This document shows positions 41,001 through 46,334 of a DNA stretch of 64,000 nucleotides, in pieces. How positions within the stretch are numbered: position 1 is the first letter of the stretch; the number at the start of each line of letters is the position of its first letter. The position numbers and the translations under genes are program-made. Source of the stretch: Octopus sinensis (Eukaryota). The notes under the pieces were generated by a model. It was not told the DNA's origin and made no database searches. It worked only from the letters and a program-made list of their open reading frames with translations. Location: assembly GCF_006345805.1 (NCBI RefSeq), contig NC_042998.1, forward strand, positions 177,506,001 to 177,570,000, in the 5' to 3' direction.

Positions 41001-44000
41001 TATCAACGAAAGCCAGGTACAGAGGTTTGTCTTTGGCTAGGTATTTCTCTTGCAGCTGTCTTACCAGAAATACAGCATCAGTGGTGCTTTTCCCTGGCAC
41101 GGACCCAAACTGCATCTCATCTAGACTGACTCTCTCCCTAATTAGTTGGGCTATGACCTTCTCCGTGACTTTCATTAGCTGATCCAACAACTTGATACCT
41201 CTGTACGTATTTGTATCTAAAGCATCACCTTTACCTTTGAAGCAGTTGACTATGGTGCTGCTACACCAGTCATTGGGTATGACTCCTTCATGTATCACCT
41301 GGTTAACTATACGGGTGAACAGGCTATAGCCGCTATATGGTGGCTAAGCTACAGCTGACACCTCTGAGGTGATTCCTGATGGGCCGGGGGCTTTCCCTGA
41401 CTTCATACCCTTAATTGCTTTATCTACCAAGGTACTGTCAATTCGGATAGCTGGTCACTCTCTTTCTCCCATTCATTTTCTTTATTGAGCAACCTTTCAT
41501 AATGGCATCTCCAAACCTCTCTCTTTGCAGCCTAGCTTAATGCATGTGAACCATCATCCATGTGGACACATTTCTGTCCTACGACATCACGATTCTCTCT
41601 CACATACTGTCTTGCAACACGAAATACCTCAAGTCTTTGGTCCTCATGGTGCAGAACATGGAAGATGGACTTTAAACAATGATGATATATATATACACAC
41701 ACCGTTCCCCAACACACCAGCACATATTTATCTTGGGTAATCCCATAAGTAATGCGGTTTTGACAATTGCATGAACTAAAAGAGGGAGGGGGATGTGATA
41801 AACTGCTTTCCTGAACATGCTATGAAAAGAGGTAGTAATTTACCTTGTCCTTATTCTTAGTGCAAGTTTTGAAGAGTGCAGTTCGATTTCAACAGTTATT
41901 TTTTGAAAGCTATAATGGAAGTGACAAAGGAGCATATTCAGCATATTTTACTTTATGAGTTCAATAAGGGCAACAACACAATGGAAAGTGTGAGGAATAT
42001 TAATGCAGTATATGGAGATCAGACAATAAATGTAAACCAGCGTCCATGGTGGTTCCAGAAATTCTGTGCCAGAAACTACAGCCTAGAAGATCAGCCTCGT
42101 CCTGGAAGATCTATAGAGTTCGACTAGGATGTCCTGCAAACCTTGGTAGAACAAAATCCCATTGTAACTGTTGAGGAACTAGCAGAGAAGCTTGGATTTG
42201 GTCATTCAGCCATTCATTGACACCTGTGTGCCATTGGAAAAGTCAGCAAATTGCGTCAATGGGTTCCTCACAAAGTTTCTGTGTCTAATCATGCACAGAA
42301 AGTGAATGTGTGCTTTTCTTTGCTGTCATGTCTCAAAAATGAACCTTTTTTGGACTGAATAGTGACTGGTGATGAGAAATAGGTTCTCTATAAAAATGTC
42401 AAGCTCTGAAGACAATGGTTAGTGAAAGGAGAAACACTGACACCCCAGGCTATAGAAGGTCTTCACCTACCTAAGTTGTTCCTATATGTTTGGTGGGATA
42501 TGAAAGGCTTATTCCACTTCAAACTTTTAAACCCAAACCAAATGATAACAAAGGAGATCCAATGCAAGCAGTTTGGGTGGCTTAAGTCAGTGCGAGAAGA
42601 AAAATGACCATCTTTGGTTTCAAGATGAAAGGTGTTTTTTATTCAGGGTAATGCTCGACCACACACAGGGAGGATGACATTTCAAAGGCTGGAGCAGTTT
42701 GGATGGGAAATGATGCCCCACCCTCCATATTCACTGAACATTGTCCCATCTGATTATCATTTATTCTGCAGTCTTTAAAATCATTTGGACAGAAAAAATA
42801 CAAATTCTGTAGACGAGGTCAGAACAGTACTGGAGGAGAATTTTTTCTCACGGAGAAGTGAATTTTGGAAGACAGGACTTGCAAATCTACCAGATAGATA
42901 GAAGAAAATGAAAGAGAGTATATTTTAGATTAAAAAAGAATTTTATCTTCATTATGAAAAATAAAAGAAGTTAAGAAAACCGCATTATTTATAGGATGAC
43001 ACTATATATTAGAAAGAATGAATGAATAGGCAAAACATGTGGTATCACTATAGAGCATGGAATTTATAATTCAAATAAATATAATTGCATATTTGTTAGA
43101 GGAAATAAGGGATTAAAAAGTAGTGCACTTATATATACCTATTATATTGTGTCATTCAATGCAATTTTGTACTCTCTCTGTCTCTCTATATATATATATG
43201 TGTGTGTGTGTGTGTGTGTAGTCATTTTTTTCCTTTAAGACTTGTATTCACATAATTATTTCTATTGTGTTGTAGCACGGGATCAGAGTCTTGATGCAAG
43301 TCGTGAAATGTCACCTAATATATTAACATCCTCAGAGTCTCCTTTGTCTATCGAATATATCATGGCTAGGGAAGCTGCTGAAGACGACACAAAACCTCTA
43401 CAGTCTGTTGTTAACATTATATCAGAGAGTTCAATAGAAGATGTTCTGGAGGTAGAAAGCTCAGTTGAAATTGTTGGAGCAAAATCATCTTCTGTAAAAG
43501 AGCAACATGCCATAAGTACACCACCTCAAGAAAGACTTCAAAGTGAAGGTATAGAAGAAAAAGATGTCACAGCAGAGGAAATAACTCAAGAAGCTCAAGA
43601 TGAGGTAAGTAAACCACCTGAAGCTGCAGAAGAAACTGAGAAACCACCTGAAGCTGCAGAAGAAACTGAGAAACCACCTGAAGCTGCAGAAGAAACTGAG
43701 AAACCACCTGAAGCTGCAGAAGCCGAGAAACCACCTGAAGCTGCAGAAGAAGCTGAGAAACCACCTGAAGCTGCAGAAGAAGCTGAGAAACCACCTGAAG
43801 CTGCAGAAGCCGAGAAACCACCTGAAGCTGCAGAAGAAACTGGGAAACCACCTGAAGCTGCAGAAGCCGAGAAACCACCTGAAGCTGCAGAAGAAGCTGA
43901 GAAACCACCTGAAGCTGCAGAAGAAGCTGAGAAACCACCTGAAGCTGCAGAAGAAGCTGAGAAACCACCTGAAGCTGCAGAAGCTGAGAAACCACCTGAA

Positions 44001-44565: not shown

Positions 44566-46334
44566 ATTCTACCATTTTCTTAATAACCAGATTTCTTGAT
44601 TTTGCCCTGTTCAATGTCTTATATTCAAGACAACAGACAGCTCTAGGTATTATCTTTTCACTTTCTGAACTCTTTTATATTTTTTTATAACCTAAGTGAC
44701 TTAGACAGGTGCTAGATACTCTGAGTCTCACAACAGTTTAGTCACCTTGGAAAAAGTTTCTTTAACTATGTTCTGATCAACTCAGCCATGAAAGAAATGT
44801 TTTAATTGATATTAATAGGAACTGTAAAGCCATGAAGTAGTGGTGGCCCAATAAAATGTGTGCAGTAAGTGGTTAGTAATAGTCTAAAACCTTGTCTAAA
44901 AAGGGGGAAAGAATATATGACGGAGACTTCAACTCTGTAAGCTGCTCCATAGGCAACCTGTTGTGGAGTGCAGTAACTCTAAAAAAGGACAGATGGAACT
45001 CTTTAGTCTACTTTAGTGCTGTAAAGGGGTTAGTGATGGGCATATTGTTCAACTATAAAAGAAATATTAAAAATTTCCCTAAAAATATGACCTAAGCATT
45101 GAAGTTGACCATTTTTCTTTACTCTGCAGTATATGTGTGTGTGCTAGATAAAGGACTGCCGTAAATGGCAAGATGATGAGTGACCTTTTGTTTTCTTTTT
45201 TCTATGTCAAAGACTATATTGTCTGTGATTTTTCTCCATGTAAGACAGCAACCATAGCCATTACCATGCTTTTGTTAATAGTTTTAGATGCCTCTGAAAT
45301 TGTGTGCCAACATAGACACCCTCTCAGCACTCCCACCAATGACCCAGTGGAATATTGAGGATATAACAGATAGAGGGAGAGAGGGCTGCAGCAGCATATG
45401 GCTGGTATTCATTCACTGCTGAGTAGACAAGAGTAATGTGAAGTAATATGCATTTCATATGGATGCAAGAGACTGCTTGGTTCAGTAATGGAACTCATGG
45501 CCTTATGACTGTGAGTCCAACACTTTAACCATTTATGCTACATGGTCATATGTAAAAGACTAAGGTATGATTTAAAGGACATTTGGTTGGTATGGAAAAA
45601 CAAATGTAAAATGAAGATGATGGGGTGAAAGAAGAGGATAAACAGCTTAGTAATTGTTTAAGTATCTTGTCTCTGTTGGTTACTGTTTTCGGAACCCAAT
45701 ACAGATTTAGATTTTAAGCACCTCAATACTTAAGAAAATAGAAATATGGTTCTTATATAAAACAAATAACTGAGAAAATACTTACCCCACAGGGGAGGTA
45801 TACTTACAGCCCTTGTGCTGGGATGTTCCAAGAGATCTAGCTTGAACTATCGTGATATCTGGCTGCTGATTGGTCTATAACTTGGCTGCTCACATGGACA
45901 TGGTGTTGTTATGCTGTGATTTTAACTTCTTAATCACATGACTTGATTTTCAGTCTTGCTACATATATATGTACATGTGTGTGTGCGTGTGCATGTATGT
46001 GTGTGTGTGTGTGCATGTATTTATGTGTGGGTACATTAGCACCCATCCAACCCATTAACCATCCATGAGCTCATTGCTTAAATAGCCACTAAATATAGCA
46101 ATGTAACGTTATTGGATATACCAATTTTACATACTAAACACATTCCTGACAGCTGGTACATAAATATTAATGACTTGTATGGATGGGTACTGATGAAGCA
46201 AAATCTCCTGAAATATGGCATATTTTTCATCTTTGATCTTATTGTTGTTTACATTAGGCATACTTGGATATGAAAAGTTATAGCAAAATTAATGCTGGCT
46301 ACAATTTCTATAGAAGAATCTGTAGAGATAACCT

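Follow-up and report, generated by a model that had tools for sequence, protein, structure and literature searches.

Intermediate chain IC1 of the sea-urchin outer dynein arm combines one N-terminal thioredoxin-like module with three NDK domains and is said to end in a glutamate-rich C-terminal region, while NME9/TXNDC6 carries one NDK domain. The human orthologue of IC1 is NME8 (alias DNAI8, also TXNDC3, SPTRX2 or 'TNDK-IC'), which has the same layout and whose isoform TXNDC3d7 varies in an internal exon, not in the tail (PMC8754002; for the orthology also PMC4415241 and PMC2777172). We analysed a stretch of 64,000 nucleotides (nt) from Octopus sinensis (assembly GCF_006345805.1, contig NC_042998.1, positions 177,506,001 to 177,570,000 of the forward strand; hereafter the window, in which position 1 is the first letter), whose plus strand carries a gene that, on the evidence of its domains and nearest relatives, is the cephalopod orthologue of NME8/TXNDC3, of the sea-urchin IC1 type. 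The domain order is the familiar one, with one N-terminal thioredoxin-like module and three NDK domains, followed by an acidic tail. A first-pass annotation had proposed that this tail can be removed by a splice switch. Our analysis indicates that positions 43276-44459 are likely the constitutive last coding exon of the octopod gene. This single terminal exon encodes an acidic linker of 109 amino acids (aa), 29 tandem units that each span 9 or 10 residues, and a conserved PATVE end, and the GTAAGT motif at the 5' edge of the array would be a mere Val-Ser codon pair. Transcripts would end at the first or second AATAAA with no further splicing, and the length of the octopus tail would be tuned by repeat number rather than by splicing. 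The tail itself may be a disordered, negatively charged spacer or bristle, entropic and electrostatic in action, on the outer dynein arm.

The terminal exon opens at 43275/43276, where an acceptor, ttgtag, is followed by CACGGG, and its frame is open from 43278 to a TAA stop and joins exon 38822-38928 in phase. Its unique, non-repeat part (43276-43604, plus strand) encodes 109 acidic, Ser-rich aa that are 82% identical to residues 596-698 of the Octopus bimaculoides orthologue. An exhaustive search of 1.84 billion representatives with this unique part returned O. bimaculoides as the sole related cluster, together with one unrelated repetitive protein, and found no transcript fragment ending in AQDENE, the ending predicted for a spliced form. 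A word-indexed protein search with the acidic 109-aa segment alone missed the 82%-identical, 103-residue O. bimaculoides match, so a blank result from that search does not equal absence.

The tandem array itself occupies 43611-44434 (plus strand) and is made of KPPEAAE(E)[AT][EGV] units. Tandem Repeats Finder reported it across 43611-44434 with a period of 30, higher-order periods of 57 and 87, 28.6 copies and 90% matches, which is far beyond chance. Parsed by unit it comprises 29 repeats, of which 17 measure 30 nt, 11 measure 27 nt and the last is diverged, with the first 18 nt the same in all units and variation limited to the last three or four codons. At 44435-44459 (plus strand) the last unit ends and is followed by SPATVE, the C-terminus beyond the array, and by the TAA stop (44457-44459). 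From Val-Ser to its last residue the tail is 284 aa long and consists mainly of E (93), A (76), P (59) and K (29), that is 33% Glu, 27% Ala, 21% Pro and 10% Lys. Every Lys of the array precedes a Pro, which makes the repeats resistant to trypsin. Its computed net charge, -64 over this length and -62 for the array alone, agrees with the earlier estimate of about -63. Judged by its reading frame, the array is protein-coding, because its units are only 27 or 30 nt long and the sole open sense reading is the one that continues from the upstream exon (7 and 43 stops interrupt the remaining two), and because O. bimaculoides shares the DEVSK junction, the repeat unit and the PATVE end. The first-pass claim of a coding, acidic Lys/Pro/Glu/Ala repeat tail is borne out by the open frame, the unit lengths and the annotation of the sister species. 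Near-identity of the units points to a recent expansion or homogenisation. In a hand alignment, 16 of the 30 nt that precede the array (43581-43610) agree with the repeat unit, with a GAAGCT core common to both and GTAAGT standing where the last two codons of a unit would be; this acidic stretch may have been the seed of the array.

In O. bimaculoides, whose locus was retrieved as L001, the direct orthologue is annotated as 'thioredoxin domain-containing protein 6' X1-X4 (XP_052834457-60, with the older XP_014768808) and has the same exon structure, DEVSK junction, unit and PATVE end. Its isoforms measure 867 aa (X1), 857 aa (X2), 849 aa (X3) and 847 aa (X4), and the older X3 measures 777 aa. 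When aligned, these five differ only at an alternative N-terminus and in 10-, 20- or 90-residue in-frame gaps within the array, and all five read through D-E-V-S-K into the array. X1-X4 are the complete numbered RefSeq set and include no tail-less model. Since part of the array is a run of N in the O. bimaculoides assembly (L001 52184-52266; a second run, 52526-52535, lies just past the second AATAAA), the length differences within the array probably reflect gap filling and not splicing. The window protein ends SPATVE* and that of O. bimaculoides LPATVEEESK*, with GAA where the window has TAA, so that the window stop comes earlier and leaves four residues fewer. All O. bimaculoides units are 30 nt long, in an array broken by the assembly gap; in the window species, units of 27 and of 30 nt occur side by side, with A/V/G variants. 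The make-up and number of the units are particular to each species.

The two octopuses are 88-92% identical over the whole locus including introns, and the exons are 88-94.5% identical. A codon comparison of window exons 12454-38928 and 43278-43610 with L001 gave, for NDK1-3 (424 codons), a synonymous divergence (dS) of 0.106, a non-synonymous divergence (dN) of 0.078 and a dN/dS of 0.74; in the unique tail linker (106 codons) there were 22.5 non-synonymous versus 2.5 synonymous differences, for a dN/dS of about 2.7. The exons are no better conserved than the introns, and the protein evolves almost neutrally between the two species, a pattern common among sperm proteins and suggestive of relaxed constraint or positive selection. 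Further downstream, a stretch of about 500 nt directly after the second AATAAA (44593-45096) has no O. bimaculoides alignment; about 200 nt stand there in that species, beginning with a run of N, and the difference is an insertion, a deletion or an assembly gap.

All the sequence elements from which the splice switch had been assembled (donor, acceptor, stop and three AATAAA motifs) are present in the window. The donor-like GAG/GTAAGT lies at 43602-43610 on the plus strand (boundary 43604/43605), matches 8 of 9 consensus positions and, at the array's 5' edge, encodes Glu-Val-Ser in frame. The acceptor candidate CCATGTTTTGTTGCAG lies at 44541-44556 on the same strand, with 12 of 20 positions pyrimidines, and its boundary at 44556/44557 reads TTTTGTTGCAG and then AATGAATAA. 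Between them is the 952-nt GT-AG segment of the first-pass annotation, whose removal would give the ending AQDE-NE*; the proposed 43604^44557 junction would join CAAGATGAG to AATGAATAAATTC, and the read-through sequence is GATGAGGTAAGTAAACCACC. Donors were scored against MAG/GTRAGT across both strands of the 64-kb window at a threshold of at least 8/9, which yielded 13 sites on the plus strand and 21 on the minus strand, two of which are real donors of the gene and one the candidate; AGGTAAGT occurs once per strand. At about 0.24 decoy donors per kb over about 390 nt of non-redundant exon sequence, a decoy this good is roughly a one-in-ten event. For acceptors we required a pyrimidine content at least that of the candidate, a pyrimidine at -3 and no upstream AG. 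Sites of this kind occur about five times per kb on either strand (P 0.38 per 100 nt and 0.81 per 400 nt), and the candidate ranks near the bottom among the twelve real acceptors of the gene. Of the proposed pair, only the donor is uncommon, the acceptor being of a quality met at background frequency. An in-frame stop two codons past the acceptor is trivial, being expected in any frame of an AT-rich 3' flank. A search of the last intron and of the downstream sequence to 64000 for another acidic exon to which the 43604 donor could be joined found only (GA)n microsatellite artefacts. Nor does the segment qualify as an exitron, as the acceptor lies 97 nt beyond the stop and 952 nt is not a multiple of three.

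Animal poly(A) sites have a GU- or U-rich element downstream of the cleavage position, and cleavage takes place 10-30 nt past the hexamer. Three AATAAA motifs follow the stop on the plus strand. The one at 44500-44505 lies 41 nt past the stop and is kept in O. bimaculoides, as is the one at 44561-44566, which overlaps the TAA of the hypothetical NE* ending; the third, at 44850-44855, falls within the stretch 44593-45096 that has no aligned counterpart in that species. The AATAAA at 44500 is the most likely candidate for the poly(A) signal in use. CCATGTTTTGTTG is found 36-49 nt after this conserved motif, and the whole T/GT-rich stretch ending in CAG spans 36-51 nt after it, so placed that the 'acceptor' stretch is more plausibly the downstream GU-rich element of the 44500 signal than a splice acceptor. 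If the 44500 site is used, the 3' untranslated region (3' UTR) would be about 60-75 nt long and the AG at 44556 would lie outside the mature mRNA.

Several observations weigh against a constitutive terminal exon. GAG/GTAAGT equals the best real donors of the gene and is the sole exonic site of at least 8/9 within it; it lies exactly at the boundary between unique part and array and is intact in O. bimaculoides, which also keeps an AG at the acceptor position. RefSeq models, moreover, can miss rare or tissue-restricted junctions, and our reading rests on the annotation of a sister species. Finally, the tail exon of Sepia is not terminal, which provides a cephalopod precedent for splicing out of the tail exon. 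A regulated switch, in which the 43604 donor competes with read-through and polyadenylation and splicing to 44557 yields AQDE-NE*, so that the tail is present or absent by tissue, could draw on these points, on the consensus strength and rarity of the donor, and on a usable AG 952 nt downstream, accompanied by a branch-like TTAAT and a pyrimidine tract of moderate quality. It could also draw on the variation of the tail by splicing in other molluscs and on one deposited Sepia pharaonis model that leaves the tail exon at an internal GAA/GTAACA. We nonetheless consider such a switch unlikely. The tail is kept in all five O. bimaculoides isoforms (the complete RefSeq set X1-X4 and the older one), in every listed isoform of four other molluscs and in five transcript assemblies that cluster with S. 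pharaonis; and four predicted tail-less proteins (two N-termini, ending in AQDENE or AQDE) were sought by exact look-up in about 15 billion sequences, with none found. Acceptors of equal quality, at about five per kb, have a 38% chance of occurring in any 100 nt, and use of the 44561 poly(A) signal would leave a last exon just 30 nt or so in length. In O. bimaculoides the acceptor region reads TGTTTTGTAGTAG and then AATGAATAA, where a T-to-A change (TTGCAG to TAGTAG) breaks the pyrimidine run and makes a second AG three bases upstream. Conservation of GTAAGT and of the acceptor, which had been put forward as a test of the switch, gave a mixed and uninformative answer in this species. There the nine donor nucleotides are unchanged and are read as V-S by every annotated isoform, and the acceptor is weakened. 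An unchanged 9-mer is expected in about 40% of cases without selection, and the retention of the donor and the change in the acceptor are therefore both without evidential value. We rejected conservation as a splice-site test, given that the two octopuses agree at about 90% of positions in introns and exons alike, which is a neutral level. Argonauta hians was considered as a deeper test of donor conservation and proved unusable, as its gene model ends 16 residues after NDK3. The narrower proposal, that the donor at the array edge is live in some tissue and removes the whole 284-aa tail by competition with the 44500 poly(A) signal, appears to us quite unlikely. If it were true, octopus would switch the tail on and off, whereas cassette exons give other molluscs a tail of graded length.

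Two further accounts of the same elements deserve consideration. Acceptor 44557 might serve a short 3'-UTR intron (44466-44556) with a donor, ACA/GTAAAT, 6 nt after the stop, leaving 43604 as an occasional alternative 5' site. Sepia offers an analogue in TTG/GTAAGT, 4 nt after the stop, followed by a 550-nt 3'-UTR intron; GTAAAT lies just after or across the stop in both octopus species, and GAG/GTAAAT is a real donor elsewhere in the gene. Yet the proteins of O. bimaculoides end VEEESK*, which needs read-through, as splicing would give VEEEK*, and in the window this donor (44465/44466) agrees with the consensus at just 6 of 9 positions. Such an intron would also contain the conserved AATAAA at 44500, and nothing similar to the Sepia UTR exon was found, leaving this arrangement with a very slim chance. 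Scarcely credible, in our view, is a constitutive 43604 donor that would make the array a non-coding minisatellite in an intron or 3' region with an accidental open frame. Minisatellites are often without stops, all three antisense frames of the array are open too and the donor is strong, but the restriction of units to 27 or 30 nt, the 7 and 43 stops of the other sense frames, the continuity of the frame with the upstream exon and the C-terminus common to O. bimaculoides all speak for translation, as do the RefSeq models, which translate the array. Acidic tails are present in orthologues of other molluscs and in decapodiform transcripts, and there is no downstream coding exon to receive such a splice. 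The constitutive last coding exon remains the reading we favour.

The identity of the gene, which the first-pass annotation had recognised as NME8/IC1, was confirmed by three NDK domains, by orthologues that combine thioredoxin and NDK domains and by a phase-consistent exon chain. The Pfam family PF00334 (NDK) matched on three stretches (E 5.7e-99), and PF00085 (thioredoxin) matched on one exon alone with an E of 8e-4 and 19.8 bits, below the curated cut-off of 23.5 bits; the other thioredoxin exons were placed using the O. bimaculoides protein, and the orthologues carry PF00085. Nearly all of the top 120 matches of the full-length query were proteins with both domains (E down to 4e-279) from molluscs, annelids, brachiopods and amphioxus, under names such as TXNDC3 homolog, TXNDC6-like and NME8. 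The best relatives were molluscan 'thioredoxin domain-containing protein 3 homolog / NME8' entries, headed by O. bimaculoides XP_052834459 with 82% identity at 100% coverage. By orthology, the protein is a putative physical subunit of the outer dynein arm. Its thioredoxin active-site motif, QEWAGPC (window 1975-1995), is without the first cysteine. WAGPC was also seen in O. bimaculoides, Sepia and a squid-like transcript, and WSGPC in Argonauta; the first cysteine is missing in all four cephalopods seen, and WCGPC is kept in Pecten, Argopecten, Littorina and Haliotis. In cephalopods the thioredoxin module probably has no redox activity.

A phase-consistent chain of GT-AG exons was assembled on the plus strand from 12454 to the terminal exon, and all of the following exons lie on that strand. 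The first coding exon, of about 48 aa, lies upstream of the window. The thioredoxin-domain exon at 1964-2067, the one with the sub-threshold PF00085 match, was located by tblastn with O. bimaculoides X1 residues 49-89. Three further 5' exons (5328-5399, 7169-7288 and 10554-10586) hold the rest of the thioredoxin domain and a linker; they were found by tblastn with X1 residues 84-156, and their coordinates are approximate tblastn extents with unrefined splice boundaries. NDK1-NDK3 are encoded by eleven exons, at 12454-12533, 13579-13671, 16567-16721, 18576-18650, 19194-19306, 22730-22874, 24367-24474, 27638-27786, 31202-31340, 35317-35424 and 38822-38928, with GT-AG, phase-compatible introns, and each of these exons is ungapped in O. 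bimaculoides. A chimeric query of exon pieces matched only an NME7-like protein and bacterial NDK, and served to locate the NDK exons. Transposon remnants are found in the last introns and downstream of the gene (40197-41343 on the minus strand, 33925-34143, 37552-37764, 41873-42124, 46332-46730 and 47441-47725), including a reverse-transcriptase open frame with a YADD motif on the minus strand of the last intron and several mariner/Tc1-like transposase fragments.

Acidic tails are common among the molluscan orthologues. NDK3 is followed by 237-347 aa of tail, with a net charge of -59 to -84, in Littorina, Argopecten, Haliotis and Pecten, and the tail of O. bimaculoides falls in the same charge range. 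We aligned 6-23 RefSeq isoforms per species, all of them predictions, from Pecten maximus, Argopecten irradians, Littorina saxatilis and Haliotis asinina. Segments that are present in some isoforms and absent from others cluster just after NDK3, with a small cassette in the linker between the thioredoxin module and NDK1, while the distal tail is constant, and none of the listed RefSeq isoforms of these four molluscs is tail-less. Molluscan orthologues have up to 39 numbered RefSeq isoforms, which combine small proximal-tail segments and the one linker segment. A splice-variable tail is a feature of the family in annotated gene models, and one that is graded rather than all-or-none.

Among cephalopods, S. 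pharaonis has five ETQEDAKQTS repeats of 10 residues in its tail, and the tail of a squid-like (decapodiform) transcript has KTEETPEAT-type repeats that are weakly similar to the octopus unit. The five transcript assemblies that cluster with S. pharaonis NME8 all carry the full acidic tail. One Sepia transcript assembly (L004) was mapped onto the S. pharaonis genome (L003), and here the tail exon has a canonical TTG/GTAAGT donor 4 nt after the stop, followed by a 550-nt intron and then a non-coding last exon (L003 57317-57329 and 57874-58394; L004 2217-2755). A comparison of this 3'-UTR exon with the octopus loci found no similarity. One deposited S. pharaonis model splices out of the tail exon earlier, at the internal GAA/GTAACA, which is a weak site. 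Deposited S. pharaonis protein models read the 3' non-coding exon as a coding, non-acidic ending, which looks like a mis-prediction. The Argonauta hians gene model (L002 33272-42350) ends 16 residues past NDK3 in a mini-exon, and the 6.4 kb that separate it from the neighbouring DIP2-like gene contain neither a tandem array nor an acidic open frame. Either this lineage has lost the tail or the gene model is incomplete.

Taken together, the gene described here represents one species' version of an octopus gene that was already annotated, and its tail is a local form of a widespread family feature. More specifically, it would be a lineage-specific form of the polyanionic, disordered C-terminal extension of lophotrochozoan and amphioxus orthologues. 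Such an IC1/NME8 extension is kept across molluscs and built differently, from small alternative segments in scallops and snails and from single-exon tandem arrays in octopus and Sepia, and it is apparently missing from the Argonauta gene model. Because the tail is kept but differently built, is apparently absent in Argonauta and belongs to a protein that evolves near-neutrally in octopus, these patterns suggest that its length and charge matter, not its sequence. The tail is a tractable target for work on its role on the outer arm, and the comparative picture should be of some use to the axonemal dynein field; a splice switch, if true, would supply a natural comparison with and without the tail.

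Set beside known systems, the layout proposed for the switch, with an internal donor, a stop and AATAAA in the would-be intron and a downstream acceptor and AATAAA, is like that of immunoglobulin mu (secreted/membrane) and calcitonin/CGRP. For this class of composite terminal exon the defining observation is the existence of two mRNA forms, and in this the octopus gene differs, as two forms are not recorded for its orthologue. Pecten, Argopecten, Littorina and Haliotis resemble octopus in having a polyanionic tail directly after NDK3, whose length varies between their predicted isoforms, but they vary the proximal tail by many small alternative segments, whereas octopus uses one exon with no annotated tail splicing. 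Sepia is closer, with its tail in one large exon after the last NDK exon and with 10-residue repeats, and differs by a transcript-supported donor 4 nt past the stop that joins a non-coding exon, of which no homologue was detected in octopus. Compared with sea-urchin IC1 and human NME8, with which it shares the N-terminal thioredoxin-like module and the three NDK domains, the octopus protein stands apart in its WAGPC motif, where theirs is WCGPC, and in a tail for which a single exon encodes units of 9 and 10 residues, repeated in tandem almost perfectly.

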